A stretch of DNA of 64,000 nt from Podarcis erhardii. Taxonomy: Eukaryota. Position 1 is the first letter of the stretch. The number at the start of each line of letters is the position of its first letter. The stretch is from assembly GCA_964252035.1 (NCBI GenBank), contig OZ176216.1, one strand, 5' to 3'. The translations under genes and the position numbers were made by a program. Shown here one piece after another: positions 8,490 to 63,281 of this stretch. A model generated the notes under the pieces. That model was not told the origin of the DNA. It saw nothing but the letters and a program-made list of their open reading frames with translations, and searched no databases.

Positions 8490-8610
8490 GGATCTTTGGC
8501 TGTTGCTGAACTACAATTCCCATCAGACCTGGCAAGCATGGCCAGTGACCTAGAATGATGGGAGCTGTAGTTCAGCAACCAATGGAGGGCCCAAGGTTCT
8601 CCACACCTGC
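8490..8610. mobile_element. Hairpin MITE fragment (hAT-like), related to 37065-37200
   Basis: Internal inverted repeat gttgctgaactacaattcccatca / tgatgggagctgtagttcagcaac. Confidence 0.65.
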
Positions 8611-17220: not shown

Positions 17221-17923
17221 GAAGAGCAGTAGGCTCTTCTGGAGTCTTCAACCAGAAGTTGGATAGGCATCTGTTGGGGTGCGTGGTAGCTCTGGATTTC
17301 CTACTAGAAGGACCCCATCTCAACTCTGTGGTTCTACACACACACTTTTCATTTTAAACCATGGTTATTAAGATTGAGCAGGGACACTCCTGTAAAATTA
17401 ATATTCACTGAGTCAGAATTGCAAGTATATGCAGAAGGTGACGTTCTCATTGATTTTGCATCAGCACTGGAATTCTCTTCCTCCAAAGACTCACTAAATG
17501 CATCCTCCAAAAAACATTGTAAGACTTAAATTCCAAACTTTTGGTAGCTAAGGGAAAGAGCATAGAAAAATTAACATATAGTATTTCCATCCACCACTGT
17601 CTGGATATTCTCATGCTATAGATCAGAGGATGCTGATTTACTAAATGTATATCCTCCCGTTGTCAGAAGACCACTAGGCAGATTCTAACATGCAACCGAA
17701 AGGTCAATGCATGACCTAATACATATGCATCCTAAAAACTGAAACAATTATATACATACAAGTCTAAAAATAATTGCATAATAAAATACAGATTCTTGTA
17801 ACAGTAATAGCATACAAATGAATGGGGAGAAAATCAGCAGCAGTGTATCTAAAATAAAAAAACAGAAAGGCACAAAGAGTCTTCACACAGAATCTTCTCT
17901 CAAGTGTAGCTCTTAATCCTGGC

Positions 17924-18803
17924 CAGTGGCGTAGCGTGGGGGGTGCAAGGGGTGCCGGCCGCACCGGGCGCAACATCTGGGGGGGCACACTCGCTGCCTC
18001 CAGAGTCGCCGAAGAGCCTCGGGGCTCAGCTCCTTTGGGAGGAGGGGTCAGGCTGGGCGACCAGGGGGAGCAGCAGGCGCCAGCAAGGAGGTCCGGAGCC
18101 GGAGCCGGAGCCTGGCCAGGATCGCGCGCAGGACGGGGCGCAAGAGGGAGGGGAGAGTCGAGCCTGTCCCCCCCGCGAGGACTGCTGCGAAGAGGCGGGA
18201 GGGAGAGGAGGCCCCTTGGGAGGAGCGCGCAGGTGCTGGGGCGGCAGCGCTGGGCGGGGGCCGAGGGGTGGGCGCCCCCCTGCGCAGGCATCGCCGCGCC
18301 GCCGCCGCGGGCTTGGCTGGGCCGCCGGCCGAGGGGAAGCACCAAACAAGGCCAGGATCCAGGCCCGCCCCGCTCCCCTTATTTGGCGCCCGGTTCCGGC
18401 TCCCGGGTGGCCTCCTCCCACCCCCTCTCGCTACCAGTGGAAAGAGAGACGGAGCCGCAGCGGAACCCGCAGCCTTTGCAGGCGCCGGCCGGGGGAGGGG
18501 AGCGCGGAGGAGCCCCGCGGGGCCTGGGCCCGGCCAGCCGAGCCTCCCGAATTGCGCCCCGCAGCCAGGATCTTGTGGCGAGGAAGGAGCCCAGTCTGCG
18601 CCCTCCTTCCCCACAGAGCTGCAGAGGGAAATCAAGGTTCTCCTGCTAGTTTCTCTTCTTCTCTTCCCCACACTGCGTTGCAACCGTGCCCCCAGCGGCG
18701 GCAGGTTAGGGGTTAGGGGCGCAAATTACTTGCCTTGCCCCGGGTTATGGGGCGCAAATTACTTGCCTTGCCCCGGGTGCTGACAACCCACGCTACGCCG
18801 CTG
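17924..18803 (+). mobile_element. Young hAT non-autonomous element (880 bp) with GC/CpG-rich interior
   Basis: TIRs CAGTGGCGTAGCGTGG / CCACGCTACGCCGCTG; perfect 8-bp TSD ATCCTGGC (17916-17923 and 18804-18811); two subterminal direct repeats ggggcgcaaattacttgccttgccccgggt. Confidence 0.93.
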
Positions 18804-20412
18804 ATCCTGGCCACCCACAGAAAATGACAGACCTTCCCAGCTTTCACCTGGGAGCTTCCCTTTCTTCTCCCAGTCTTGCATCCTGGGAGATCTTCACTTT
18901 CCTGCCTCCCAGGGTCCCTTCCACCATCTACCTGCCACTTTCATGTGGATGCAGTTCTTGGCACCCACTGACATCCCAGAAAGGGTGGCACGGGACTTAG
19001 TTGAACCTGGATGGAGTCAGGGGTTTTCTGTTGCTGAAAGACAGCAACCTTGTCTGGCTTCCTGGCTGGTATGTCCTCTAAGCCTCCCATAACAAATAAA
19101 TCAGGCATGTGGCTCTAATCCTTCTGGTAAAGGGAGAATATTCACAAGTTATCTGGCCCGATGAAAACAAGCTTGTTCAAAATGTGCCTGATTCCATTGT
19201 TGTTGTTTTTTCCCCTTTCCACTGAGTCCCTGCAAACGTGCCCAAAATTTTGCTCCATATAAATGGAATTAACCAATTAGCAATGTGCTGGCAGCCTTGG
19301 AATCTCAACCTGGCAGCTCTGAATGCTTTGCCCCTCACTCCACACATCACATGCTTTGCGGCGAACTCTTGAGCAGGGGCTACCAACCAGTACAATTCAG
19401 TACGGATGCTGCAGTGAGGCCAGGCGAAGACATTAGCATCCTTCAAACCAGTAGAATTGGCACAGAAACAGCTTCTACTTCTCTGTAGGCCAGATCAGGA
19501 ATATGTGCTTTCTGCAGGGCTTGGTAAAGATGCCAAACCTGATGTTTGCAGTTTTAAATTTCATTTCAGCACCTCTTCATATGTTCTCTTTTGTGCATAC
19601 AGTACCAGGGCTTGCAAACCTTTGGGTACACATTTTCCATGGACACCCTCCACCCTCCACCCCCCACATCCACACACTCATGCATTCACACACACAGCAA
19701 ACACAACTCTCTCTCACTTCCTCTCTTATCAGCAGTTAGGTTTGAAAATTTGTTTTCCTCGCAAACCTAATGGAGAGTGGTGGGGTGATCTTCCCAATGA
19801 GTGAGTCGAGGGAAGCAAGAACTAACTTTCCACCTTCAGGTGCAATTTCCAGAAAGTGTGCCCCACCACCATAATGCTTGGGACACAACAACAACCTTCT
19901 ACTGGAACCCTATGTGGCGATACCAAAGATTGGACTTGGGATCTTCTACATACCAGGACAAAACAAGTTTCCTCACAGCCATAATCTCCATGCCTGGAAA
20001 CTCCTGGTTAATTATTGACTTTATGTTATTAAGAATGAATGGATTGTTTCTTGATACAAAACTTCCAAAGTGGTGTGACAATAATTTTTTTTTTACAAAA
20101 AAATTAAAACAATAAAGCCACAAAGATCGATAAAATGAACAAGAAGCAGGAGACAGAATTAATAAAACAGCAGTCCATAAAATCCATGAAACGAAGCAGA
20201 AACAATTCTGCTAAAAGCCTCGGTGAATGAAGAAGCCTTAACCTGGCACAGGAAGGATAGTAGTGCAAACCTGGCGCCTGAAGGATAATAATGTTTTACT
20301 TTTTAAACAAGCTTCTGTTGCTGCTTAATGTATTGATTGATGGTGCAGCTCTCTGCGTTTTCCAGTGTTGTAAGCTTGGCAATCTGATAGATGGGTGTCT
20401 GCTTTTTATTTA

Positions 20413-20543
20413 CAAGTAGGTAGCCGTGTTGGTCTGCCATAGTCGAAACAAAATAAAAAAATTCCTTCCAGTAGCACCTTAGAGACCAACTAAGTTTGTT
20501 ATTGGTAGGAGCTTTCGTGTGCATGCACTCTTCTTCAGATACC
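20413..20543. mobile_element. Penelope-like terminal repeat fragment
   Basis: ccagtagcaccttagagacc...tgtgcatgcactcttcttcagatac matches 48006-48078 of the GIY-YIG-bearing copy. Confidence 0.8.
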
Positions 20544-20605
20544 ACTTTTTATTTGTAAGCTGCTTTAAGCAATTCCTTAGTGGAGGAGAAAAGCAGGAAA
20601 TGAGA

Positions 20606-20610
<5 letters not shown>

Positions 20611-20650
<40 letters not shown>
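20611..20650. repeat. (AG)20 microsatellite
   Basis: Seen directly. Confidence 0.95.
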
Positions 20651-20651
<1 letters not shown>

Positions 20652-20654
<3 letters not shown>

Positions 20655-20788
20655 TTAGAGCATGGTGCTGACAACAACAAGGTTGCAGGTTCAGTCCCCA
20701 TAAGGGACAGCTGAATATTCCTGCCCTGCAGAGCATTGGACTAGAATGATTGATCCTCAGGGTCATTTCTAACTCTATGATTCTATGA
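20652..20788 (+). mobile_element. SINE with tRNA-Ile-derived head and CR1 tail
   Basis: tggttagagcatggtgctgacaacaacaaggttgcaggttcagtcccc resembles tRNA-Ile, followed by the CR1 3' end ...aactctatgattctatga. Confidence 0.7.
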
Positions 20789-23700
20789 GACATTGCAGTC
20801 TATGAGCTTCTTGCAATGAGATAGAATATGAGGATATATATGCACTTCACAGATCTCTCAAGGGAGGCCGTTCTAAAGGCTGTGCTCCTCTCTCTCCTGT
20901 GATCACCCATCAATTTGCAGAAGGAAAGGACCCCCAAGAACTCCCTCAGAAGTATAGATCACAAATTAGGTCGAGGTTCATATGGGAGGAGGAGGTCCTT
21001 CAAGCTACAACAGGAATCTTACTCTGTGTCAGCAATGGAGGCACATTTCTGGCCCCACAGGCTAGATCCTTACCTGGCTCCACCTTGTAGGCCAGCTTTG
21101 ACAGGTGGGCAGTGCAACCCACCTGTCATTCACCTGACAGCATTATTTCAAGTGATGGACAGGTGGGTTTTCCTGCCTATCTGTCAAAGTCTCTTCCGAA
21201 GCACTTTTCAAGTGCCTGGCAGCCAGCTGGTTGTTGGGTGCTTGGGAATTACAGTGCAAGGGGCTTTGCTGCTCTAGTGTCACTAAGTGGTTTGCATGTA
21301 AACCACTGCAAAATTTGAGCTTTCCCCTCTCCATTTTAGCAGCAGTTTCAGTGCTTGGTGCTATTGGAGCAACACATATCCCACCATCAGCAGATGAGAG
21401 GCGGGGGCACCTTGCTCCAACATAGAAACAGTCAGGAGCTCACTTGAAGCTCCAGATTGTTCTTTCATAGCCACGTTGGTGCCCACCCCACACTTAACAT
21501 CATGCAGGTGAGCATGGTTTAAAGACAAAGACCTTGCAGGCCAAATGGAGAGGCTTCACAGGCCAGGTTTTGCCCATTGGCTAGAAGTTCCCCACCCCAG
21601 CCTTACACTTTAGTTTAGCTAGCATGCCAGTTAATCTGGACCACAGAGGTATTGCTGTATCTACCAGTAAATTGCAGCAAGCTCATTTCTTAATAAAATA
21701 AAAGCCTGTTATTGAGCTGGTACAAGGAGGTTCTCCATTTCAGGAAGGAAACAAGAGATGCAGATCATATGATGCTGCGAAATTCAAGGGCATATAGAGA
21801 AGCAGGAGTGCAATTATGTGATTTAATTAAATGATTACGATAGGGGTGAAGTCCTTCGCAAGAAGCAAGACTGGGATTGTTTACTTTTGGAAGGAAGGTG
21901 GATGAGAGAAAGAGTACATTATTAAAAGTACACTGAGAAGACTTATTTGGCTCGCCTCAGAGAAGAAAGAAGGCACCCAGTGATAGAAGGTAGTAAATTC
22001 AAAACTGATAAGTGAAAATAATGAAAGCGTTTGTTTGCAAATCAAAGGTGTGTGCGCATGTAAAAATCTTGTTTATAGTCTCTCCTACAATTCTGGCCTC
22101 CGTACTTTTTGCCCACCCCTCAACTAAGACCTCAGAAGAGATTTAGCTAGTGAAACTGAAGTATTAGTCCTGACTTTTGCTCCACAGATGGATCTGCACT
22201 TGTTTTGGGCCCTGATAGGCAAATAAAGAGGCAGGCACATAAGCTGGGGTTTAACTGGGCCTCTTTTATTTAGACTTTAACTTATAATAAGCGGGGGGGT
22301 GACTATGGAGCAGGAACTGACTTAGCTGTATAACTATAGCCATTGGGCAACCTGCCTTGGTCACACCCTGAAGGTGAGAAGGGAGGCCTTGGCTTGTCGC
22401 CAGGACCACAAAACCCCAGGTGAATGGGGGAGTTTGGCCTCAAAGGACCTTGATTTTGGCCCCTGTCTCAAAACTGCCTCTTTACCTCCACTGTCCTCTA
22501 TTGGGGTGCTTTGAAAAATTGCAAGGCTTCTTCTCTCCAACCCTAACATTGTAGCTCCCCTGCCTGCAAGGGCCTTGGCATCCTCCTCATCCTTGCTTAG
22601 TGTGTCTCATCCAGACAGAGTGAGCTGCTAAGTGTCATGCGTGCAGGGTGCTCTGCTAATGCTGGCCTCTTTCCTTCTTTTGCTTTATTCACTGGTGACA
22701 GTTTCATAAAACCCAGCCACCACTCACTATCCATCAAATCTCAGAATCCAAAGTCCAGAACGCCTTGCATCTCTCCACTCCATCATCGCCGCTATAAATC
22801 CTGACAGGTATCTTTTCGCCCAAATTCCCAGTGCCTCGTGTTTCTACATATCATTTCCTCCTTCCTGGTTTTGGTTGGCCAAGTACATTTTATTACTTAT
22901 CACCCCTTCCCCCCCAGTGCTAAAAATTTCTACTGGGTTTAATTAAATCTCCTGTTCATCTGATGCACATGCCAAGTGACTTTGCCCTGGAAGGCTCCCC
23001 CCCCCCCTCTCTCTCTCTCTCGGGGCCAAGTTAGATTTGACAGCAGAATAGATGTGCATTGAAACCCTGATCTGCCACCATCCGGCAGAAAGCAGCTAGT
23101 CCTTGGCTTTAATGAGCAGAAGGTCCAGTAAGGTAGGGTAGGTAGGGAAAGCTCAGTCCTGCGCCACTGTCCTTCTCTGTTGCCCCTTTCACTCACTTCC
23201 AGAATCAGACTCAGGAATGGTTGGAACAAGGGGTTTGTAAAGAGGCACGCCTAGGGTGGAATGAGAGGGTTTAAACACCCTGATCTGCTGCTACTGCAAA
23301 GAAAAGAATAAACCATGCACCTTAAGTCCAATCAGACACATATCAAACAAGAAGTTTCACAGTTTGTGATTCCATTGAGTGATATGCAACTTACCAGCTA
23401 TGAATCAGACTATGGCAGGTCCTAGAGACCCTCCAAAAGCCTGCTTTTGGATCTCCCAAGCAAGCATATGTGATTTATTGAGACCCTGATAGGGCACCAC
23501 ACATGGCTAATAATGGTCTCCTGCATTTCAGCTCAGTGGGCCACAGGGCTTGCAGGCCTAAACAAAAGACATGTGGGAAGCTCCAGGTTAGGTTTTTCTA
23601 ACTTCTGTCATTTACAGAATGGACATGTTGTATATTAACTGTTTATTGCAACAGCCAGGGATGATGCATGAATGTGAATAGGTGAAAGGCATATCTAACT

Positions 23701-24244
23701 CTATAACAAGCCTGCTCATGCCATCCTCACACGATCTCAGAACACAGGGCGTCTTTAAGAGAGTCAGTTCAGACATTCAAATGCAAGTCATTGAGCTACG
23801 TATGTGCCATATTTGAACTGGCCCTTTTGACTACAACTGATTTCTTGTAAATATCTGACCACATGTTGAAATCAGAACAGAGCCACAAGAAATGCTGTGC
23901 TTCTGGTGGTTTGTTTTCATCTAATCAAGTGAAGTTATATTTCTGTGCAAAACAAGCAAATGCATAACAATTACAGGGAACGCACAACAATTACAGGGAA
24001 AGGTCATGCTAGCAGTCGTTTTCTAAAATTACACATGGGGTGTTAAATGGTGTAGCTAGAGTTCGCATTAGGTGCCACTCATGACCCTCTGACAAAAGGA
24101 GGAGTTTGGAGGGCAGCTTACTGTACTCTTAACCCACCAGGTTCCCACAGTTCATGAGTGGTCTGCTAGGGCCAGTTAGCAATTGGTGACTTTTACCTGT
24201 TCAGATCAGATTTTCCTCAGAACTAATCTCTTGTGCTTGGGTCA

Positions 24245-24346
24245 TGCTGGCTGGTTTCTCACAGCCATCTGGTTGGCCACTGTGAGAACAGGATACTGGA
24301 CCAGATAGTCCATGGGCCTGATCCAGCAGGCTCTTCTTATGTCCTT
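24245..24346 (+). mobile_element. CR1-type LINE 3' end
   Basis: ggttggccactgtgagaacaggat...cctgatccagcaggctcttcttatg; reverse copies near 1680, 29890, 31850 and 53600. Confidence 0.7.
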
Positions 24347-26094
24347 AGGCTTATCCTGAGTCCAAATAATAGAGAAATCACCCAGCTTATTTCTAGGACA
24401 ATATGAACTGGAACCCTCTCCTTCCCCTCCACCATCCTTGTGAGCCTCCAATCCTTCTTGCTTCCACCCCATGCATAACCACCACCTCTACTGACATTGA
24501 AGTAACCCTTGGGGAAACTACATTTCCCATGGGCTATTTGCAGGTGAGGAGATGAGACCTACCTCCCTGTCTTTCAGTTACTTGCCATGGCTTGCCACCA
24601 CTTTCCACATCCTTTCCACAACTGGACTAGGAGATAGCGCAGGTGAGAGCTTTTGAAGGAGCGACGCAGGGGATGGGATGGGAATTCTTCTCTGACTCAG
24701 GTTGAAATCTAATTCAGAGAAGAATTCAGAAAAGAACAGTTAGGAGCCCCTTGGACTTGTATTTCTGAGCCTGGAGCTATGGTCACTGTGACATTATTAT
24801 CAATGGTCAAGATGTTCCCTGCTTGCCTCTTCTTCTAAAGTCCTCACTGCAGTCTTTGATCACTCTGATGCTTTTCTTTCCCTGTGGTTTTTAGCACCTT
24901 TGGGGAGTCAAAGGCAGCATGTGCATGCAGACAGCTCTTGTTCCTTTCCAGCATCTTTCTGGATGCTGTTGCTAGGTGAGAAGCTGGAAGTTCTTCTAGC
25001 TGCAGCTACTGCTATGCCTTTACTTTTGATTGAAGAGATCACACTCCCTGCTATGCCTGTCTCCCCATCAGCCTCCGCCGCCACCCACCCGCCCAGCCAG
25101 GGGTTTTCATTACAAAGGCATTAACTGCCATCTGGTGACAAGGTTTGCAGTCCGGATGGCAAATGATGAACTCAGCTGAAAGAGGAGTTGGTGCATGTGA
25201 AGCAAAGGCAAAAGAGACAACATCCTCCAGACACCCAGCTTCAGAATGACAGCCGGACTGTCTTCCTCTCTTTGCAACATGAAGGTCCTCTTTCCTCCCC
25301 TCTCTTGCTTTGTTTGTTCAGTCAAGTCAGACAAGGCATGACTCACTTGAGCCCACTCTCCTGCTCTCCTCTTGGCTGCCTCTAAAAAAACTCACCCTTT
25401 TTTTATTCTGCAAAATCAAACCACCCCCTCCTTCAAGATCTGGTGGCCCATGAATGTCACACGGTTATGGCAGGTGTTTTGAGCTTATGGGAGAAAGATA
25501 GCTGCACTCCTGTAGTTCTTGCAAGGAGAGAGCCGTTATACCTGAGATCACAAAAGGAGGGAGCAGCAGACAGTAACCTGGCAACACACTTCCTTGGGTG
25601 TACCAAATAGGACCATTTTTACCTGGACCGAGAGATAAGCTTTTGGCAGGGAAATGACATTCTGAGTATTAACAAACCTCCTCTATAGCCCAGCATCCTT
25701 CAATGATGTCCCTGGACATTAAAATAGAGCCAATACCTTATTGTCTTCCCTCCGAGGCAATTTTGAAGAAGCTGATTATTATATTTTTAAAAAATATGCT
25801 TGATACACACAAAACAATGATTAAGAGAAGGAAAAATAGACCCTATTATTAAGGAGTGGAATTGCAGAGCTCCAGGCTATTTTGCCTTTCCTCTTCCTAC
25901 CCTCACCCCTCCTTCTTCACCTGAATTCATTCTCGCTCTGTTTCTTAAAAAGGGGGGGAGGAGAGAGAGTCAATTTAAATGTAGCTCTCAGGCCCTGTCC
26001 AAAAGCAATAAGAGTCAGAATGGCATGATCAGCTAAACATTATCAAGCCCCTTTGTCTGTCCAGGAGAGAGGTTAAAATTTAAGTAATCCTGTG

Positions 26095-26129
<35 letters not shown>

Positions 26130-26446
26130 GCTCTCTCTTCAGTGCAACTTTCCTCCTCCCCTTCCTTTCTAGAGTAATAGTGGGTATTTTTAAATCCACT
26201 GGCAGCAGGGTCCATCACAGAAACAGAAACAGAAACCCTCCTGCCTCTCCACTGGAGCTCCACTTGACAGCCCCATAATGAGGGACTTTGCAAATTCCTC
26301 ACAGTTTACTGAATTGACAGCCTGAAGGGTTGAGACTGTCTCCAGCAGAGGGGAAATTTACACACAAACAAACCCAACAACAAGACGCAAACCTTGCAAA
26401 CATCTTTAACCCAGCCGAAATACCAAAGAAAAGACAAATTGCATGC

Positions 26447-26484
26447 ATCTATCTATCTATCTATCTATCTAGATCTATCTATCT
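26447..26484. repeat. (ATCT)n tetranucleotide repeat, one interruption
   Basis: Seen directly. Confidence 0.9.
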
Positions 26485-28231
26485 CCAAATGTGTTAAATA
26501 TTCTGATTAGATTTCAGTTGGGCAGCTCAACTTGAGGTAGTAAGAGAAGCCCAAGAGGCTCGTGGCTGAATGTTCAAATTGTAGCTATCACTGAATAATG
26601 GGGAAGGGAGAAGAATTTTGGAGATGTATATATGGGGGTCAGGAGATGCTTTCTTGAGCAGATATTTGATACCAGTGCTGCATCAGCTTAGTCTTTGAGT
26701 CCTTCCCTTGCTTGAGTTGTCTGGAACCATCAGTTGTGAACGCAACATGTTGCTCAACTCGACCATGCTGTCAGCTCCCTGTTTGTGGCTAGGTATGGTT
26801 CATCCCTATCAGCCAGTTGAGGCCAATCATGTAGGACAAATGCGGCCCTGCCCAGTCAAGCTCTGTTTGCACTCCCTCCCAACTGCTTACTTTGCTGTCT
26901 ACAACCTCTCAAAGAGAGTGACACTGGCCGTCAGTCTCCTCCTTCTCCTTGGTCTCAGTGTTGCCTTTGAGAGAAATGGGGAGCCTTTCAAAATTATCCT
27001 TCAGAATAATGTATTCCAGTGATATATAAGAGGTATCCGTAGACAGCAGTTTAAACATTTATATTAAGTTTGACCTAGCAAAGTCAGAGAAACCCAATGA
27101 TAGTTTGGCAGTTCGGAGACCATGCAGTCATCGCCATTCACTGCTTAAAGTGTGACTGTGCTTAGAACATGAATTATGAATTGATGTACAATACAAACTT
27201 AGCAATCATATTGGTGCTGCCAGCATGTTCATGTTATAAATATAAGAAAAACAACTATTTTATTACGTCTGAGAGATTGAATATAGAGGTCTCGTTTTCT
27301 GTTGTCAAACCTGTAGGATTTCCTAAATGGTTTCGGAAATTTGGTTTCTATTAAATAAACCTGTCACACACCCGTTTGCCCATGAGGAACAGTTTTCCAA
27401 ATTGGTTTCAGTAAGTCTATCTGCAGTTTCGAGAAAAATACAAAAGAGCAACACACACACCGAATCGTTACAAGTTTGGTATTCAGAAGAAGAAAAGCCC
27501 TCTGATTTCTGTTTATTTGTTTATTTTGCCTTTTGAAGTCAATGTAGCCTTTGATAGTAGGCAGTGGAGATATCAGATAGTCTGTTGCAAATAGATTAGT
27601 TGATTCTAATGTCCCCAGATGAAACAGATGACCATGACATCGATGCCTATGTCTTTATAAAGGACAAGAACTGCTTTTGTTTGTTTGTTCGTTCATTTCT
27701 TAAGGGATTTAATGAAAATGTGACACCTTCCACTGGGAATACCACCCTGCTGAGAGCCTGAGGGCTCTGCTCCTGCCTCTCTCCACCTGGCCCAGGGCAG
27801 GGCCTGGCAGGTTTTAAAAGGACTGCTGCTGCTCAGCAGAGAGGGCTTCTTCCTTTAAATTGATTTTTTAATATCATTTTAAATTGTTTTCTTAGTGTTT
27901 TAACTGTTTTTATCTGAGTTGTAAGGGCATTTTGTAGGGTGTGCCTGGGAGGAGAGGAGTGGGGGAGAGCAGGGGGAGGCCCAATGACAGTGGTTCTGGG
28001 TAGGGGGAGGTATGGCATGGGAGGGGGATCAGACAGGGTAAGAGGCACACGGCACAGGCAGTTAGGGTGGTCATTTCTAGAGGGTGTTGCTTGGGGAATG
28101 CTTTTCAGCCCTGTGGAGCCTTCAGTGTGGGGTTCCGCAGGGCTGGATCCTATCTCCCACGTTGTTTAACATCTACATGAAACTGCTGGGTGGTGTTTTC
28201 TGGAGGCTTGGAGATGTTGGCTGTGCCTAAG

Positions 28232-28697
28232 TGTTATGCTTCCAAACTGAGTCTTTGGACTCCCAGTCCCTGAGTAGTGATAGCTCTGAGCAGGACACAA
28301 ACCCACTTCCTGGCCCATCCCAAGTGGACCTATCAGCACCAGATCCTTTACAGACCCCCCTGAGCCCAAATGTTGTACCTTTGACTATGCCACGGAGGAA
28401 TGGATTATGGACTCCTCTGACCATAAAGAAAGTTTTGCAGAGCTTTCTGCTGCCAAACCTAGAAGGAGTTTCACCAAAGGACAATGGTCCTTTGATGTGT
28501 TGCAGCCTATAGAAAGTGAAGCTCCAGCTCCAGCCCAAAATATAAAGGTCTTGCAATTGAAACATCCAGTCAGTGAGACAACTTGTCTATCCTGCTCTGG
28601 ACTGCAAGGTTGGCACTTGTGATCGTGAACTTCTTTCTGCTGAATTCTTTGACCCATCACACTTGTTTCTGTCCAGGGTTCTGACTTCACTCCAACA
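28232..28697 (+). mobile_element. Probable solo LTR
   Basis: TGTTA...AACA ends, TATA-like atataaag near 28540, LTR-like length. No TSD confirmed. Confidence 0.4.
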
Positions 28698-29368
28698 CAA
28701 TGCCAAATGAGACGATCCTGGGCCTCCCTCCCACCTTATGTATCAAGACACTCAGAATGCCCCTAAAGGAAGGCTTGTATTTGAAATGTCAACATACTCT
28801 ATTGCACATGGAGGTTGCTTCCTTTCTTTTCAAGCTGGTACATCTTGCCTTATGACTTGCCCCATTAATATTTGCACTGTCTACAGCCTTGGGAAGAGTA
28901 TAGAAATTCTCAATGAGATGAGGACAAGTCACATGGTGAGAAGTTGTGCAAAATTGATGAGCCAGTCAGGGATTACTTGCAAGCAGAGGCTGTTCTCTGG
29001 AGGCTGTCGCCCTTAATCTTAGTATCATAAAGTTGAAGGGGTCTTGTGGACCATCAAGTCCAACTCCCTGCTGAATGAAGGAAATCCAGAAATATTATCA
29101 TGGATGTAGTGGGGGCTTTGTGTGGTGGGCATAATGTGGACTCTGAGCTTGCATTTTGCAGCTAAAATTGTATCCATTGGCTTTGACATTATTAATTTAT
29201 ATTTATTTAGCTATCTGGATAAGGAAATTATATTGAGCTCTTCCATGGTTTAAGAACAGTGGCACAAAACTTGCACTTTAAAAAGAAATATGGCTCTCCT
29301 AATTTATGTGTTAGTTGAATATTAATATGTAGAATTGTATTTACCACTATTGTATATGCATCTCTTTG

Positions 29369-29431
29369 ATGACTTTCCATGCTTTTGTATTGAATATACA
29401 GTATATTCAATACAAAAGCATGGAAAGTCAT
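29369..29431. repeat. Perfect inverted repeat, 31-bp arms with 1-nt spacer
   Basis: atgactttccatgcttttgtattgaatatac-a-gtatattcaatacaaaagcatggaaagtcat. The ORF track shows nearly the same peptide on both strands here. Confidence 0.97.
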
Positions 29432-29466
29432 AAAAAAGTCATCAATGATGGAAGTTGTCCTGAATG

Positions 29467-29467
<1 letters not shown>

Positions 29468-29501
<34 letters not shown>
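29468..29501. repeat. (TG)17 microsatellite
   Basis: Seen directly. Confidence 0.95.
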
Positions 29502-29502
<1 letters not shown>

Positions 29503-31013
29503 CAACACTGAGAGTAAGGAGGAGGAAGCTGCTATGAAGTGCCACTCGCTGGACTTGTAAGTAATAAGACAGACAGCTGGGGTTATCTAAAGGCAGGCTG
29601 AGGTTTCTAGGACAGTACCCTACTGGAGCAACCTCCACTGCCCAATTCCTTGCCAACCAGATGGGATTTCCAAAAAGTGGTGCTTTGTCCTGGATCTTTG
29701 GCAAGTCAATAGAAAAATCACGCTTTTTGGCTCAGCAACTTTGGTGTTTGTCTAAAACAAAACTCAACGACTTTTGGAGTCTTCCTTAAAAAAACTAAAC
29801 ATCTTTTGGGTGGTCCTCGTTTTTTTCCTTTTTGAAATATGGCAACCCTAATAGGGCTGGCTCATGCTACAGAAATGGCCTTCTTGTGTGTCCTGACCAA
29901 TCTAGTCCAGCATCCTGTTCCCACAATGGCCAATCTGATGTCTGTGGGAGACATGAAAGCAGCACCCAAGTTTAATAGCACTGTCTTCTCCTGTGGTTTC
30001 TAGCAACTGGTCCTCAGAAGCATAGCCATCATGACTAGCAGCCACTTAGAACCTTATCCTCTGTGAATTTTTCAATTCTCTTTTAAAGTCACCCATCACA
30101 GCCTCCTGACACCAGTGTCACAGGCCCATAACAGCAGAATGTAACAGTGCTGTCATTGCATGGGTGCCTATGTATCTTGCAAGGAACTCCAATCAAAGGA
30201 ACCATTTCCCCCACTCACGTCCCATCACAGGGAAGCCAAGAAAATTAAGGAATTTAAAGAAAATAGGACAATCGAGCCCACAGAGCCATTTTGTGGCTAA
30301 CACAGTTCAAAGGTTTTCCTGCAAATTTGGAAGGATTAAAGACTTATTTAATGCATGTCTCCATACTTTACTGACAAGAATAGATGAAAGTGAATTTAAA
30401 TAAAGATTTTATTCGCTTCTTAATTATGCTGTTATTATGCCAGTTTTGGCAAAGTATTCCCCAGACGTAAAGTTTTCAAAATCAACCTTTTAAAACATTA
30501 AATTACCCTTTTAGTCTGCCAGTGATAATGATAAATACAGCTCAGTTCAATCTCATTACCCACTCTGATTCACTGGCTGGATTAATATTTGGTAAAAACT
30601 AACTGCCCTCGCAATAATCCTGTGGATATGTAAAAGAAATATTAATGGCACACAATTACAAAATAAATCTTCAGGGAATTGGGTTTCTGCATAATTAAAA
30701 AATAGGTAATGAGGGAGTTATTTTATGCAGATGTGGTGGCTATCTACTAGGTGGAACCGGGAGTTCCTTGCCAAGTTTCCAAACTTTTACCTTCAGCTTA
30801 CCTGACCTTGCCTTCATAACAATTTCTCTGCTGAGGAGTCGCAAACAAACAGAGGAAGAGCCTACTGGATCAGGCCCATCTAGTCTCATTAGACGGATGG
30901 GCACAGCAGCCATTTTAATATCCCATAATGCTTGTGGGCCCTAATGAGGTGTCACTTAGTGTGTTTGGCTGCAATTCAAGTCATGAGAACAGGCCTGGAA
31001 AAAATATGTGGTA

Positions 31014-31240
31014 CAGTGGTACCTCAGGTTACAGACGCTTCAGGTTACAGACTCCACTAACCCAGAAATAGTACCTCGGGTTAAGAACTTTGCTTCAGGA
31101 TGAGAACAGAAATCGCGTGGTGGTGGCAAGGCGGTGGAGGGAGGCCACCATTAGCTAAAGTGGTACTTCAGGTTAAGAACAGTTTCAGCTTAAGAACGGA
31201 CCTCCAGAACGAATTAAGTTCTTAACCCAAGGTACCACTG
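31014..31240. mobile_element. Tc1/mariner-pogo MITE
   Basis: TIRs cagtggtacct / aggtaccactg with TA duplications; close to the copy at 37821-38047. Confidence 0.92.
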
Positions 31241-32006
31241 TATTCCTGGTGCTGGGTGGTAACTACATTGCCACCTTTATTGTTTTACAGACAGAGACTC
31301 TGTGCCTTTAACAGCAACGGGCAAGCCTCTTCTCACCGCTTTATCTCTATGCCTGGAGAAGCTTCGCCGGTTGCTTTCTGCTTCTGTTAACTGTACAGAA
31401 CTTGCATCCATAAAATGGTTCCAACTCTACCTGGCGTTCCTCCCTGCCCCACACACCTTCCTTCATTTTCTTATTAAATGTAGTCTCCATGCTTGTTAAC
31501 TTCTTAAAATCCAGAGATCTACATTCATGGCCTTAGAGGAAAGCTCAACCTTTTCTCAATTTCATAACGAGCCAAAGATTAACCGCACGTGCTTTGCACT
31601 TAATGATAGCACTTGTGTGCAAACAGAGTGGAAAAAAGACGGCATTGCCTCCAGGATGGAGGATGCCTGCCAAGGCATCTGCATGGCGAAGCCCTTCCAT
31701 ATACTTCCTTAGCTGCTTCTGGTCAGATTTAAACACTCATTAAAAGAGAAAGTCAAAGCAGGCTGGGGAGCTTTGGAATTTACCTGGCCTGGTTCTCCAA
31801 AGGAATTCTGCATTGCTGTGGTCCTATCTGCTAGTTGAGATAGTCAGAACATAAAGAAGAGCCTGGCCACTGGGTCAGGCCAGTAGTGGCTCATCTGTTT
31901 CCGCTTCATGTTCTCACAGTGGCCAACCAGATGCCCATGGGAAACTCACATCAGGACCTGAGCACTTGTGATTCCCAGCCACTGGCATTCAGAGGTACCT
32001 GAAGTA

Positions 32007-32521
32007 CAGTGGTACCTTGGTTCTCAAACTTAATCCGTTCTGGAAGTCCGTTCCAAAACCAAAACGTTCCAAAACCAAGGCACACTTTCCCCTAGAAAGT
32101 AATGCAAAATGGATTAATCCATTCCAGACCTTTTAAAACAACCCCTAAAACAGCAATTTAACATGAATTTTACTATCTAATGAGACCATTGATCCATAAA
32201 ATGAAAGCAATAAACAATGTACTGCAGTCACACAATCAATCAATCAATCAATCAGTAGCTGAACTGGGTTCCACACAGTCACAAAAACAAAACAAAAAAG
32301 CCACAAAAACAAAAAGGCAAAATAAATAGCAAAAACAGACAGACCTCAGCGTAACACTCAAAACGGAAGCGTGGCACTCAAATCGGAAGCGTAACCCCCA
32401 AAATGGAGCAAGTTCAGCTTCCGAAAAAAGTTGGCAAACCAGAACATTTACTTCCGTGTTTGCAGTGTTTGGGTTCCAAGTTGTTTGAGTACCAAGGCAT
32501 TTGTGAACCAAGGTACCACTG
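32007..32521. mobile_element. Tigger-like MITE, 515 bp
   Basis: TIRs cagtggtaccttggttc / gaaccaaggtaccactg with TA duplications. Confidence 0.9.
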
Positions 32522-32607
32522 TAATCATTGTGTTTACTAGTGAATAATGTATCTAATACAGAAGTATCTGTGAGTTGGTCCTTGCATCACTCTAAATCCC
32601 TAAATGT

Positions 32608-32610
<3 letters not shown>

Positions 32611-32653
<43 letters not shown>
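32611..32653. repeat. (AT)n microsatellite
   Basis: Seen directly. Confidence 0.95.
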
Positions 32654-32656
<3 letters not shown>

Positions 32657-32699
32657 CATTTCTTTCTCACCTTTTCTCCAAAGAGATCAAAGTAGCATA

Positions 32700-32870
32700 T
32701 GCACCCCCCCCCTTTTATCCTCACAGCAACCTTGTGAGGTAGGCTTGGCTGAGAGAGACTGGCAGGCACAAGGTGACAGCCAGTGGGCTCCATGGCTGAG
32801 TGGGGATTTGAACCCTGGTCTCCCAGGGCCAGGGCCAGCACTCTAGCCACTGACTCACAATGGCCTGAGA
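32700..32870 (-). mobile_element. tRNA-derived MIR-like SINE fragment (similar at about 44405-44510 and 59270-59410)
   Basis: ttatcctcacagcaaccttgtgaggtagg...catggctgagtggggatttgaaccctggtctcc motif. Confidence 0.7.
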
Positions 32871-34372
32871 GCCCGCATCTCTCGCATGCTTCTTTTTGAA
32901 GGTGAGGCTCAGAGCAGGGACGTCTTGTCAGTTGCACCAGCAATCTGGAGTCCCCTGCCCAGGAAACCCTGTATTACATAATCCTTCATCCCATGAAGGC
33001 TTTGACAGACCCCCTTATTGTAGGCCTCATATCCCACAGCAGCCTTTGCCAACCTGCTGTGCTCCAGATGTCTGGAATTGGGAGATATTATAGCCTACAA
33101 CATCCTGAGGAGGACACCAAGTTGGCCAAGACTTCATAGAGTAACAAGCCATAAGCATACACCACTGAAACTAATGCATAGGCTTCCTGATTTCTTCCTT
33201 TCCATTTCCATTTCCATTTCTACTGTTATCTTTCCCATGCCAAAGTTTAGGCTGTCCTCTTTGTAAAGCATAATGTGTATTGATGGTGGCACTGTGTCAA
33301 AATAGTAAATAACCACCACCACAACAATCTTTTCGTCACTTAATTTAAAAGCAGCTGGTTTGACAGAGAGAATTTTCCCTGGGGTTGTCAAACTAAGTTG
33401 TTGTTGTTGCCGCTGCTGCCGCTGCCGCTGCTGTGATATGTTTCCTTTTGTTTTTGGATCATTGGTTTTGTTTGTTTGACTTTATTGTCCAGCGTTTTTT
33501 GTACTTTTGAGTAGAGAAGCTTGATAATAGTCACCAGATTCCTCTAAATTACTGCACAGTTTATGACTTGCTAGTTGAATGGATGCTGCTGGCTCACTCA
33601 AAAAGTATATCAGGAGGCATTCAGCTAAGTTTTACTCAGAGTAGAACCATTGTCATTAATGTGCGTAACTGAGGACTTGTCATTGCGCATCTTCCGTAAC
33701 ACTAGTCATCCAATGAAGCACGATGGTGGGAGATTCATAGGCACAAATTTATTCACCCTGTACAATCCAGATGTTGTTGAACTACAACTCCCACCAACCC
33801 AAGCCATTAGATATAGGGGCTGGTAGGAGCTGATGGGAATTGTACTGCAACAACATAATATGGGGTGCGCCACAATATCTGCCCCTGTGGTACATAGTTA
33901 AACTATGAGATTTGTTGCCACAAGATGTGATGATAGCTACAGGCTTAGATGATGTTAACAGGATGTGTGTGACATGTTCATGAAAGGTCTGTTGTGGCTA
34001 TTAGCTATAACAGCTACCTAGAAACCTCTGTGTTTGTAGGCAGTATATATCTGAATGCCAGTTGCTGGGGTGGCTGTCTTGTCATGGTTGTGGGCTTCCT
34101 AGAGTATCTGGTGTGTGATGCAGAACTAGATTTAAGTATTTCTAAGTAGGAAGTACCAGGTGCTGCTCAGGAATTCGAGGAAAACAAAAGTCCTTTGGAG
34201 GTTTTTAAGCAGGGGTTGGATGGCCATCTGTCATGGATGCTTTAGTTGAGATTCCTGCTTTGCAGAGGATTGGACTAGATGAATCTTGGGGTCCCTTCCA
34301 ACTCCACAATTCCATGATCTCCAGTGCCAGAGGCAGCATGACTCTGAGACTGTGTGCACACCATACTTCAAG

Positions 34373-34950
34373 CAGTGGCGTAGCGTGGGTTGTCAGCACC
34401 CGGGGCAAGGCAAGTAATTTGCGCCCCCTAACCCGGGGCAAGGCAAGTAATTTGCGCCCCTAACCCCTAACCTGCCACCGCTGCCAGCTTCTTCTTGCTG
34501 CTGCCTGGGCTGGGGTATTTATGGTAAGGTAGCCACGGCGGCGGCAGCAGGTCCGTGTCAGGTGATCTGACGCAAGTTGCCACTGGCACTGCCGCCCAAA
34601 CGACGCCGCTTGCCCGGAGGAGGAGGGCATAGAGGCAAGGAAAATGCAACAAGGCCCAGCAGCTGCAGCAGCAGCGGCGGCGGCGGCGGCGGGGCTGTGA
34701 GGAGGGGCTGCCTGGCACGCCCTCCGCGGCCCTGACACGCGGGGACTGCGGCGAGCGCTGAGAGCCGCTGCCTGCCAGACGCCTTCAGCCCGGATGCGCA
34801 CACAGCTCGTCGGTTCCGCGAGACATGGAGCTCTGCTACAGCCTGCACCCGAGGCTCTTCGGTGACTCCGGAGGCGGCGAGCGCGCCCCCCCCCCAGATG
34901 TTGCACCCGGTGCGGCCGGCCCCCCCTGCACCCCCCACGCTACGCCACTG
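34373..34950 (-). mobile_element. hAT non-autonomous element (578 bp), same ends as 17924-18803, inverted, different interior
   Basis: TIRs CAGTGGCGTAGCGTGG / CCACGCTACGCCACTG; TSD ACTTCAAG/ACTTTAAG (7/8); about 100-110 bp at each end align to the 17924 copy. Confidence 0.93.
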
Positions 34951-35222
34951 ACTTTAAGGCACATTTCAAGTATGCACGCACTACAAGAATCCTGGGAACT
35001 GAAGGATGCTTGAAAATGCCGCTCTGATGTGTAAACTACAGTTAACAGGCTTGTTTTTTGATGGGCGGGTGCTTCAGAAGTCCTTTAAACATTTGGTGTG
35101 TATGCAGCCAGAATGTGAGTTACTGGGGAATGACAGAGAGAGGGCTATGGTGCTCATGTCCTGCACAAGGGCTTCCCATAAACATCTGGGATGGTCACTT
35201 AGGAACTGAATGCTTGACTAGA

Positions 35223-35810: not shown

Positions 35811-36741
35811 TATAAGCATTGTTTTTATGTGAACAGGGAAACATTACTGGTGGTTCTTTTCCTCAATACTGTGAATGAGGTACACCACGAGGTGCCCGGC
35901 TTCGCTCAGTTGCAGACGCCGATGCCTCGGGCTGGTTTGTTGCCCTGGGCTGTGCTGGGGTGGGCGCCAGGCAGATCTTTGCATCCCAGCGCCGCATAAA
36001 CTTAAGACAGCCCTGCCTGAGACCTTCTGCATGCAAAGCAGATGCTCTGCAGCTGAACTACAGCCTTTCCCCCTATTCTATTTTAGCCAGTGGAAATACA
36101 AATGTTTTTCATGCCCAGAACTTAATGCAGCAATTGATTTAATAGCTATGGGGCCTTCTTTCTTAACCTTCATTCCAGGCATTAATTGTAACGAGGCCAG
36201 AAATTATTATTTTTTGAGACCTTAAGAAGGTGGGGGGGGGGGGAGAGGACTGACTGGAAACCTTAGCAGGCCCTGCCTCTCCTCTTCAATCTATCGCTTT
36301 GATTCTGGGCACTCTGTCCAAAGCAGATGGCAGCTTTTCAGAAGCTGTCCAAAAAGGCTGCCTTCCCTAGTCCAATCAAGAGCCCTCTGGCCATTTTTCT
36401 ACATGGCTGTGACAGCCCTTATGAACATACAAAGTTGCTTTATGCTGAAGGAGGCTCTCTGGCTCAGGGTTGCCCACACTATAGACAGTGGATCTCCAGA
36501 TTCTTCTCGGGCAAAGTGGGTCTCCCTACCCTGAGATTCTTTTAATGGAGATGCCAAGGATTCAGCCAGATGCCTCTGTCATCCAAAGCCTGTGCTATCA
36601 TGTGGTTTGTATCCAGCTAGGTTCTGCTCAGAATAGACTTGTTCAAATTAAAGAACCAACATTTACTGTTTTCATTAACTCCAATGGGTCTACTTTGAGT
36701 AGAGCTAGCATTGGATACAACCCAATTATGGTAGAGTCTAT

Positions 36742-39983: not shown

Positions 39984-40113
39984 NNNNNNNNNNNNNNNNN
40001 NNNNNNNNNNNNNNNNNNNNNNNNNNNNNNNNNNNNNNNNNNNNNNNNNNNNNNNNNNNNNNNNNNNNNNNNNNNNNNNNNNNNNNNNNNNNNNNNNNNN
40101 NNNNNNNNNNNNN
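39984..40113. other. Assembly gap (130 N)
   Basis: Run of N. Confidence 1.
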
Positions 40114-51753: not shown

Positions 51754-52771
51754 ATAATAATAATAATAATAAATTTTATTTATATCCCGCCCTCCCCAGC
51801 CGAAGCCGGGCTCAGGGCGGCTAACAATAATCAAATAATCAAATAATCACACATTCAAAATATTCATTATAAAAATTAAAATCAAATTAGTGGCAACCGA
51901 TTAAGCAATATTCTGTGCAGGTTGCCAGAGGAGGGAGTCAGGCTGCGCCCTGACCAAAGGCCTGGTGGAACAACTCTGTCTTGCAGGCCCTGCGGAAAGA
52001 TGTCAGGTCCCGCAGGGCCCTAGTCTCTTGTGACAGAGCGTTCCACCAGATTGGAGCCGCAGCCGAAAAGGCCCTGGCTCTAGTTGAGGCCAGCCTAACC
52101 TCTCTGAGGCCTGGGACCTTGAGGATGTTATTATTTGCAGACCGTAGGTTTCTCTGTGGGGCATACCAGGAGAGGCGGTCCCGTAGGTACGAGGGTCCTA
52201 GGCCGTATAGGGCTTTAAAGGTTAAAACCAGCACCTTAAACCTGATCCTGTACTCCACCGGGAGCCAGTGCAGCTGGTATAGTACTGGGTGAATGTGATC
52301 TCGCAGCGAAGACCCCATAAGGAGTCTCGCCGCGGCATTCTGCACCCGCTGGAGTTTCTGGGTCAGTCTCAAGGGCAGCCCCACGTAGAGCGAGTTACAA
52401 TAATCCAGTCTGGAGGTGACCGTCGCATGGATCACGGTGGCTAGGTCAGGGCGAGAGAGATAAGGGGCCAACTGCTTAGCTTGGCGGAGATGAAAAAATG
52501 CCGCCTTTGTTATAGCTGTAATCTGCACCTCCATAGAGAGGGAGGTATCGAAGATTACACCCAAACTCTTAACGGACGGTGCTGGCACTAATTGCACCCC
52601 CGCAAGAGATGGGAGTTGCCCCCTCAATCCCATATCGTCCCGGCCCAGCCAGAGGACCTCTGTCTTCAAAGGATTTAACTTCAACCGGCTCCCACGTAAC
52701 CATCCAGCCACAGCTTCCAGGCATCTCGCCAGTGTGTCCGGGGCCGAGTCAGGATGGCCATCCATCAACAG
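51754..52771 (-). mobile_element. Young 5'-truncated L2-clade LINE with open RT C-terminal frame
   Basis: RLKLNPLKTEVLW...KSLGVIFD..LSM...SRLDYCNSLYVGLP...KLQRVQNAAARL...LHWLPV..RI.FK are typical L2 motifs; (AAT)n tail at 51754; CpG retained. The first ~40 aa of the listed 319-aa ORF lie outside the element. Confidence 0.95.
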
Positions 52772-53589
52772 TCTAGCTTCATTCCTGTCTTGATTGGCCC
52801 CTTGGCCCACCTGACCATATTCCAGCTCATCCGGGGGGGATGGGACAATTCTGAGTCTTCTTTCAGGGGTGTTGGAATGTGGCAGATTCACCCCCATGCA
52901 AGAATGGGAGCATCATTCTCCCAATAGGCACATTCCTGCGTGCAATTTTACATAATATACACATTTTTTTCAAAGCAATTCCCCCCAATGTATTGAATCT
53001 TTGTATGCTATTTTTAACTAATTAATGCATTTTTATGCACTGTTTACCCTAGTGTATGTTATATTTGAGTACATTACTTGACTGGAAAACTGTGTTGCAA
53101 AATTGGCAAAGTGAGGCTCTCAAAGGAGGGTTCTGTTTTGGTTCATGGATTGTTTCAGAAAGTATGAATTGCATGGGTTTCTCTGTAAAGGAGGAGTAAA
53201 ATCAAATTTCTTCCCGATGCGTATCCAGACCTTCCCTCTTACTTTTCAGCTTTCTTTCTCTCCCCCCACCCTTTTTTTTTTTTTTTAAAAAAAAAAAGAT
53301 AACACAGCATCACATCTCTAACTTTCATCTCTAACTTTTTCTTGTGCAGATATAAAGTGTGCAGGCATCATTCTACCCAGCTGGGTACCAAAAAGCTAAG
53401 CTGCTTTCACTCTGTTCCCTTGCCACAGAATGTCTGTCTATGGGACCACATTGAAAACCTCTGAATTTCCCCTTTCATCTGCTCTTTTGATCCTCTCCCA
53501 CTGCACTAGAGTCAACTTTTCCAGGGGGACAAGGGGCTGCAATGTAAAAGAGATCCTAGAAACCTTGGAACTCCATTGCAAGCATAAAA

Positions 53590-63039: not shown

Positions 63040-63281
63040 CAGGGGCATAGCGTGTTTTGCTGACACCCGGGGCGGAAGGCAGGGTGGAGCACGTTTGCCC
63101 AGCTATCACTGCCCACACTGCTGGGTGGGTGCTCACACACTGGGCAGGGGTGGGTGCAGAGGGTGCTCTTCACTGCTGGAGCCAGGTAAGGCACGATGCA
63201 GGGAGCACCTGGTATGCCCCCCTCCAGATTGCGCTCCTAGTCCTGGGGCAATGCTCCCCCCGCCCCCATGCTATGCCACTG
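63040..63281. mobile_element. Older hAT MITE related to the CAGTGGCGTAGC family
   Basis: TIRs caggggcatagcgtg / catgctatgccactg (CpG-decayed); TSD GAGACACA/GAGACACG (7/8); subterminal gctgacacccggggc. Confidence 0.8.

Follow-up and report, generated by a model that had tools for sequence, protein, structure and literature searches.

Two hAT-like elements with common ends and unrelated CpG-island-like interiors in the lizard Podarcis erhardii

Results

Three related elements with the hallmarks of hAT transposons lie in a 64-kb stretch of Podarcis erhardii contig OZ176216.1, the whole of which was analysed here and is called the window. Element A (17924-18803, plus strand) is 880 bp long. Element B (34373-34950) is inverted relative to A, and element C (63040-63281, minus strand) is an old 242-bp relative. 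A scan with the 16-mer terminal inverted repeat (TIR) CAGTGGCGTAGCGTGG, allowing up to three mismatches, returned six matches where 0.13 were expected, and these are the two ends of each of the three elements. The TIRs of A and B start with CAG and measure 16-17 bp with zero or one mismatch; those of C are degraded. The 8-bp target-site duplication (TSD) of A, ATCCTGGC, stands at 17916-17923 and again, identical at 8/8 positions, at 18804-18811, and occurs nowhere else in the window. B is flanked by ACTTCAAG (34365-34372) and ACTTTAAG (34951-34958), and C by GAGACACA and GAGACACG, each pair agreeing at 7/8 positions.

An 8-bp TSD combined with a short TIR (about 10-25 bp) that starts with CAG or TAG is characteristic of hAT elements. 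A and B have this combination, and C has the TSD and degraded TIRs. hAT insertions follow a weak target consensus, nTnnnnAn; T2 and A7 occur together in 0/5 TSDs (ATCCTGGC, ACTTCAAG, GAGACACA, and two from the relatives below, TAAACTGC and AAGTCACA), a small sample for so weak a consensus. A hAT transposase comprises a BED finger, an RNase-H-like DDE domain, and a hAT dimerisation domain. Neither a hAT transposase nor an autonomous partner is visible in the window, where no open reading frame (ORF) of at least 130 amino acids has a Pfam match. Since their TSDs differ, A and B were inserted separately, each at its own site. They are probably fairly young insertions of one non-autonomous hAT family. 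An initial annotation, made by a model from the sequence alone, had described 16-bp TIRs and 8-bp TSDs at A and B, which the TIR scan and the comparison of flanks bear out. It had also placed a decayed relative at the position of C, in keeping with the degraded paired TIRs, the 7/8 TSD, and the low ratio of observed to expected CpG (o/e) of 0.28 found there.

A and B share their ends, and their interiors are unrelated. When A was compared with reverse-complemented B by blastn, matches were found only at A 1-100 (89% identity) and A 770-880 (97%). These blocks of 100 and 111 bp are close to the alignable ends of about 100 and 110 bp that the annotation had given. Nothing else in the 64 kb matches A or B in a blastn-type search, and each cargo is present once in the window. 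Between the interiors (669 bp in A, 364 bp in B), Smith-Waterman scores lie within the shuffled range in both orientations (z = 1.2 and 0.3), as expected from the dissimilarity reported earlier. Self-comparison ruled out that the interior of A is a palindrome or an internal duplication. Nor is it a copy of its flanks, to which no similarity was seen beyond a short motif, GCCAGGATC, described below.

The transposon chassis can be delimited with cargo-free relatives. A 21-nt TIR pattern was scanned against a metagenome collection and recovered seven contigs (L001-L007; JGI contigs with the prefixes Ga0056131_, Ga0056123_, Ga0056132_, Ga0209681_, and Ga0256913_), where about one chance match is expected by our own estimate. 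The same pattern gave one match in a similarly sized collection of bacterial genomes (in an Arthrobacter genome), which equals the estimated chance rate, and no match in a viral collection. A subterminal 24-mer had no exact match in the metagenome or viral collections. The metagenome contigs are animal DNA: L005 and L006 bear Sec7 and IQ_SEC7_PH exons of an IQSEC-type gene, next to which one of the elements lies. Their elements are plain miniature inverted-repeat transposable elements (MITEs) of 160-190 bp with the same TIR as A, B, and C, and perfect 8-bp TSDs were found at L002 (TAAACTGC) and L005/L006 (AAGTCACA). Such relatives in another animal point either to an old family of wide distribution or to transfer between distant animals.

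In an alignment with A, B, and C, the MITEs have about 55 bp in common on the right and about 63 bp on the left; the left alignment of A with C and with the MITEs of L002-L004 extends to about position 63. Because the alignment with cargo-free relatives stops at these points, the chassis appears to consist of the TIR plus about 55-65 bp per end. The existence of cargo-free relatives likewise identifies the interiors as additions to this chassis. In A, the left chassis (17924-17986, plus strand) holds the 16-bp TIR and the subterminal region common to the cargo-free relatives. The right chassis (18693-18803, plus strand) is 97% identical to that of B and contains two TTAGGGG motifs, a 33-bp tandem unit at 18710-18778, and the TIR at 18788-18803 (one mismatch); its outer 55 bp or so are homologous to the MITE ends. 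In B, the right-type chassis (34373-34483, minus strand) has the same 33-bp tandem duplication. This subterminal duplication, the doubled TTAGGGG, and the large interiors set A and B apart from C and the MITEs.

A probably descends from a B-type element. The left block common to A and B extends about 37 bp beyond the end of the alignment with the cargo-free relatives. In B, this block (34848-34950, minus strand) is made up of about 66 outer bp of chassis and TIR and about 37 inner bp that continue the cargo, corresponding to codons 9 to about 20 of an ATG-led frame. In A, the equivalent stretch (17987-18023, minus strand) encodes ...PRLFGDSGG, the peptide itself lying at 17991-18023, and the ATG and everything upstream of it are missing. 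The stretch is absent from the metagenome MITEs. Its alignment with C is weak (12/21 bases, judged by eye), and at least the 15 bp that code for PRLFG have no counterpart in C. As read from these alignments, A retains the last 15-37 bp of the cargo of B. The shared cargo edge, together with the 33-bp duplication and the TTAGGGG motif, makes it most likely that A descended from a B-type element, with a second cargo substituted for nearly all of the first. The annotation had described conserved ends of about 100 bp; the inner 15-37 bp of the left one are better read as cargo common to both elements. Because the conserved end is in part shared cargo, A and B do not look like independent captures by an empty element.

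The two elements are the only sequences of CpG-island grade in the window. A sliding scan (length at least 200 bp, GC at least 0.5, o/e at least 0.6) found exactly two blocks in the 64 kb, which coincide with A (850 bp, GC 0.72, o/e 0.71) and B (600 bp, GC 0.65, o/e 0.76). Over the whole elements, GC and o/e are 0.715 and 0.71 in A and 0.683 and 0.76 in B, against 0.445 and 0.26 in the window, and the 5-kb flanks have an o/e of 0.18-0.34. The GC- and CpG-rich interiors amid CpG-depleted DNA that had been noted before are thus real, at 0.71-0.76 against 0.26.

CpG decay was measured on the shared ends, not on the cargos. The 211 aligned end columns contain 11 substitutions between A and B, of which 8 are CpG to TpG or CpA changes and 3 lie elsewhere. 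A and B differ at 8/23 CpG sites of their ends and by about 1.5% at non-CpG sites. Because 8 of the 11 substitutions are CpG transitions, the copies appear to be decaying: A and B have been losing CpGs fast, a pattern expected for methylated DNA and not for protected islands. Island-like composition in a CpG-depleted genome normally comes from an unmethylated island. The high CpG content is most likely due to youth combined with a CpG-island source, a conclusion drawn from the ends and not from the cargos.

The cargo of B ends in what reads like the start of a host gene. This B-specific cargo (34484-34847, plus strand) is 364 bp long, CpG-island-like, and contains a (GCG/GCA)n run; it ends in an ATG at 34825. 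From there, a frame of 62 codons (MELCYSLHPRLFGDSGGGER...; 34825-35013, plus strand) runs out through the TIR into the flank. The frame begins MELCYSLHPRLFG..., in the manner of a vertebrate gene start, and from codon 9 onward it lies in the block common to A. The human long ("XL") GNAL isoform starts MGLCYSLRPLLFG; to judge by this resemblance, the cargo of B probably comes from the upstream first exon of this isoform. Searches with the frame itself gave little. The sense ORF of B had no candidate relative in a protein word search, and the frame had no match in PDB. Its first 30 codons, compared with 1.84 billion representative proteins, found only a bacterial FG-GAP-type repeat protein, which we judge to be spurious. 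Literature searches found no paper that prints the GNAL N-terminus and none on the TIR sequence. In mouse, a minor long isoform of Gnal is transcribed from a distal CpG island (PMC7099774).

On the other strand, the cargo of B resembles an annotated lizard protein. An antisense frame of 148 amino acids has one match in 5.8 billion proteins, UniRef A0A670JYM4 from Podarcis muralis, described as "MyoD family inhibitor domain containing", whose C-terminus is a genuine I-mfa domain (PF15316). The match covers 34580-34826 (minus strand) and the first 70 residues of this MDFIC model. Residues 1-8 agree fully with the antisense translation of B at the ATG, and residues 9-70 match at 78% identity (tblastn, E = 3e-25). 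By this comparison, the P. muralis MDFIC gene model appears to start inside another B-type copy, which may reflect real exonisation or an annotation artefact. The residues that come next in the model resemble other repeats of the window (8528-8605 and 33765-33806).

The cargo of A (18024-18692) is a 669-bp CpG-island-like sequence with no convincing coding frame and a single ATG. It contains one CArG box (CCTTATTTGG, at 18377) with an adjoining ETS core, as well as GC boxes. To judge by these motifs, it looks like a promoter or a 5' untranslated region (5'UTR); the resemblance points to no gene. Apart from the GCCAGGATC motif, it has no similarity to the interior of B, to the rest of the window, or to its flanks. 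Its longest frame (257 amino acids) found no relative in a protein word search. The long ORFs of A and B matched no Pfam family, transposases included, apart from a sub-threshold chance hit.

One feature of this cargo may relate it to its own locus. GCCAGGATC is the reverse complement of the right junction of A (the last TIR base plus the TSD), and it occurs three times in the cargo, at 18115, 18351, and 18564. Its first eight bases (GCCAGGAT) have just one more occurrence in the 64 kb. The first copy matches 11 nt of the junction, a length that shuffled sequences reach in 6-8 of 1000 trials, and directly behind the third stands CTTGTGGCG, similar to the start of the TIR. The same test found nothing comparable in B. 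The motifs may mean that the cargo was assembled at the locus, or they may be coincidence.

Other features of the window were recorded in passing. An ATG-led open frame of 319 codons (51938-52897, minus strand) lies in a stretch of 54% GC and has no Pfam match; it is presumably related to the C-terminal part of the ORF2 of a long interspersed nuclear element (motif ...LDYCNSLY...). A candidate tRNA at 36003-36067 (minus strand) was rejected: its Rfam match is borderline (30.8 bits, with a cut-off of 29 bits) and finds no support from ARAGORN. The sequence probably forms the head of a tRNA-derived short interspersed nuclear element. A run of 130 N at 39984-40113 is a gap or a mask.

Discussion

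We propose that A and B consist of a hAT chassis with host-derived cargo, and that A arose by replacement of the cargo of a B-type element. We give this explanation a probability of roughly 0.6. The chassis, a TIR with about 55-65 bp per end, would be recognized in trans by the transposase of an autonomous hAT element; A and B carry one subterminal unit twice. The interiors would be DNA from outside the transposon, similar in composition to an unmethylated promoter or 5' region of the CpG-island type. B would have captured a roughly 400-bp fragment that ends in a start codon and about 13-19 codons, while A carries a different, apparently non-coding and promoter-like, 669 bp. The cargo of a B-type element could have been swapped for that of A by template switching while a break within the element was being repaired, a gap-filling or fork stalling and template switching (FoSTeS)-type mechanism of the kind proposed for Pack-TIRs, TIR elements that carry fragments of host genes.

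Four points weigh against this proposal. The window holds no donor, that is, no parental copy free of TIRs, for either cargo. Pfam and word searches identified no source gene for the cargo of A, and the GNAL assignment for B, based on a resemblance to the human N-terminus, drew no match from the representative proteins beyond the spurious bacterial one. Finally, the inner part of the left block aligns ambiguously with C, so that the border between chassis and cargo is uncertain by about 20 bp.

The strongest competitor is suggested by the junction motif. Under it, a B-type insertion was broken in place and repaired with foreign templates, and A would be a single-copy element that has never moved with its present cargo. 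The rarity of the motif outside the cargo, the 11-nt match, and the TIR-like sequence behind one copy all speak for such an assembly, and most animal Pack-TIRs are single-copy gap fillings (Tan et al., PMC8277862). Against this, the interior of A has no similarity to its flanks or to the rest of the window apart from the motif, and both TIRs and the TSD are intact, as they would be after simple insertion. The motif could also belong to the cargo and match the TSD by chance, with a probability of about 3% for a single match. We regard acquisition in situ as unlikely, at perhaps a third of the weight given to the proposal above. Slightly less probable still is that the interiors never had a host donor and are sequences fixed in subfamilies, whether from other GC-rich repeats or from horizontally transferred DNA. 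The window lacks a donor, A has neither a coding frame nor a family match, and closely similar termini occur in the DNA of an unrelated animal, which points to a family that is widespread or has moved between lineages. Opposed to this, the ATG-led frame of B has the look of a vertebrate gene start, cargo is missing from the relatives in the other animal, and the resident repeats of a genome with a CpG o/e of 0.26 could hardly supply island composition.

It is very improbable that A and B were derived from one long autonomous hAT element by different internal deletions. Non-autonomous hAT elements commonly arise in this way, and no parent is at hand for comparison. However, the points of divergence between A and B coincide on both sides, unlike those of independent deletions, and both interiors have 68-72% GC and CpG of island grade. 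The interior ORFs match neither a transposase nor any other Pfam family, and the longer ORFs of the window likewise offer no hAT transposase.

Replacement of host-derived cargo on a hAT chassis may also be part of something larger. We tentatively suggest that the lacertid chassis acts as a serial promoter shuttle, repeatedly swapping CpG-island or first-exon cargo (GNAL-type, then A-type) as it spreads through introns. Host genes might then gain first exons or start sites from some copies, a possibility raised by the MDFIC model of P. muralis. This broader scenario is clearly less probable than the proposal above; if true, it would put a vertebrate family on the scale of the Pack-MULEs of plants. 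In practical terms, an intronic "CpG island" in the P. erhardii genome may be a transposon and not a promoter.

Comparison with known systems

In plants, DNA transposons are well known to capture and spread gene starts; the animal cases are mostly single-copy events. A survey of 100 animal genomes found 370 young Pack-TIRs, 208 of them hAT elements (Tan et al. 2021, PMC8277862). Multicopy cases numbered only four (three in frog and one in alligator), among them a frog hAT element with a 291-bp 5'UTR fragment; five multicopy cases were plotted, these and the fly Ssk-FB4s, and four of the five had GC-rich sources (PMC8277862). The sole lizard surveyed, anoCar2, had 0 Pack-TIRs, but it also had almost no annotated TIR elements (PMC8277862). 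Our own literature search found no paper on cargo-carrying hAT elements in lacertids.

In that survey, the flanks of a Pack-TIR had to cover at least 10 bp of the transposon termini, and a unique, TIR-free parental copy had to exist at at least 90% identity and 80-120% of the length (PMC8277862). Multicopy status calls for one chimera at several loci, each with its own TSD (PMC8277862). In A and B, full TIRs and 55-63 bp of family-wide subterminal sequence stand on both sides of the cargo, and the 64 kb contain no parental copy. The evidence partly supports A and B as a further instance of this documented kind of hAT element. The initial annotation had read the family as a candidate Pack-hAT that captures host DNA. 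Of that reading, the single chassis, the unrelated island-grade interiors, the cargo-free relatives, the lack of Pfam matches, and the ATG-led frame at the end of the interior of B all speak in favour; the implied independence of the two captures does not seem to hold.

The closest parallel is found among animal Pack-TIRs, above all the multicopy Pack-hAT-N8_XT of Xenopus tropicalis. It too is a non-autonomous hAT element with intact TIRs, 8-bp TSDs, and a separate TSD for each copy, and it carries a few hundred bp of GC-rich host DNA of the 5'UTR or promoter type. Here, in contrast, one chassis bears two unrelated cargos, one seemingly replacing the other, and the host is a squamate; the parental copy that defines the Xenopus case was not found in the 64-kb window. 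Ordinary hAT MITEs, represented by C and by the elements of L002-L006, have the same TIR, homologous subterminal sequence, and 8-bp TSDs. They differ in being 160-242 bp long, in having no CpG-island interior, and in having one subterminal unit instead of two.

The Pack-MULEs of rice and other plants resemble A and B in having a TIR chassis with GC-rich cargo, which in their case consists of captured gene fragments; single elements may combine pieces of several loci and may amplify (PMC8277862). They are Mutator elements with TSDs of 9-11 bp and long TIRs, whereas the elements described here are hAT elements of an animal, with an 8-bp TSD and a 16-bp TIR. The cargo of Pack-MULEs is biased toward the 5' ends of genes. 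What the present case adds is the delimitation of chassis and cargo, a shared cargo edge that points to replacement, evidence of CpG decay, and the MDFIC model. Several cargos in one squamate hAT family, one of them apparently a replacement for another, would be evidence that DNA transposons of vertebrates can scatter promoter-like CpG islands. With such a family one could also ask whether these islands become silenced or are taken up as new first exons.

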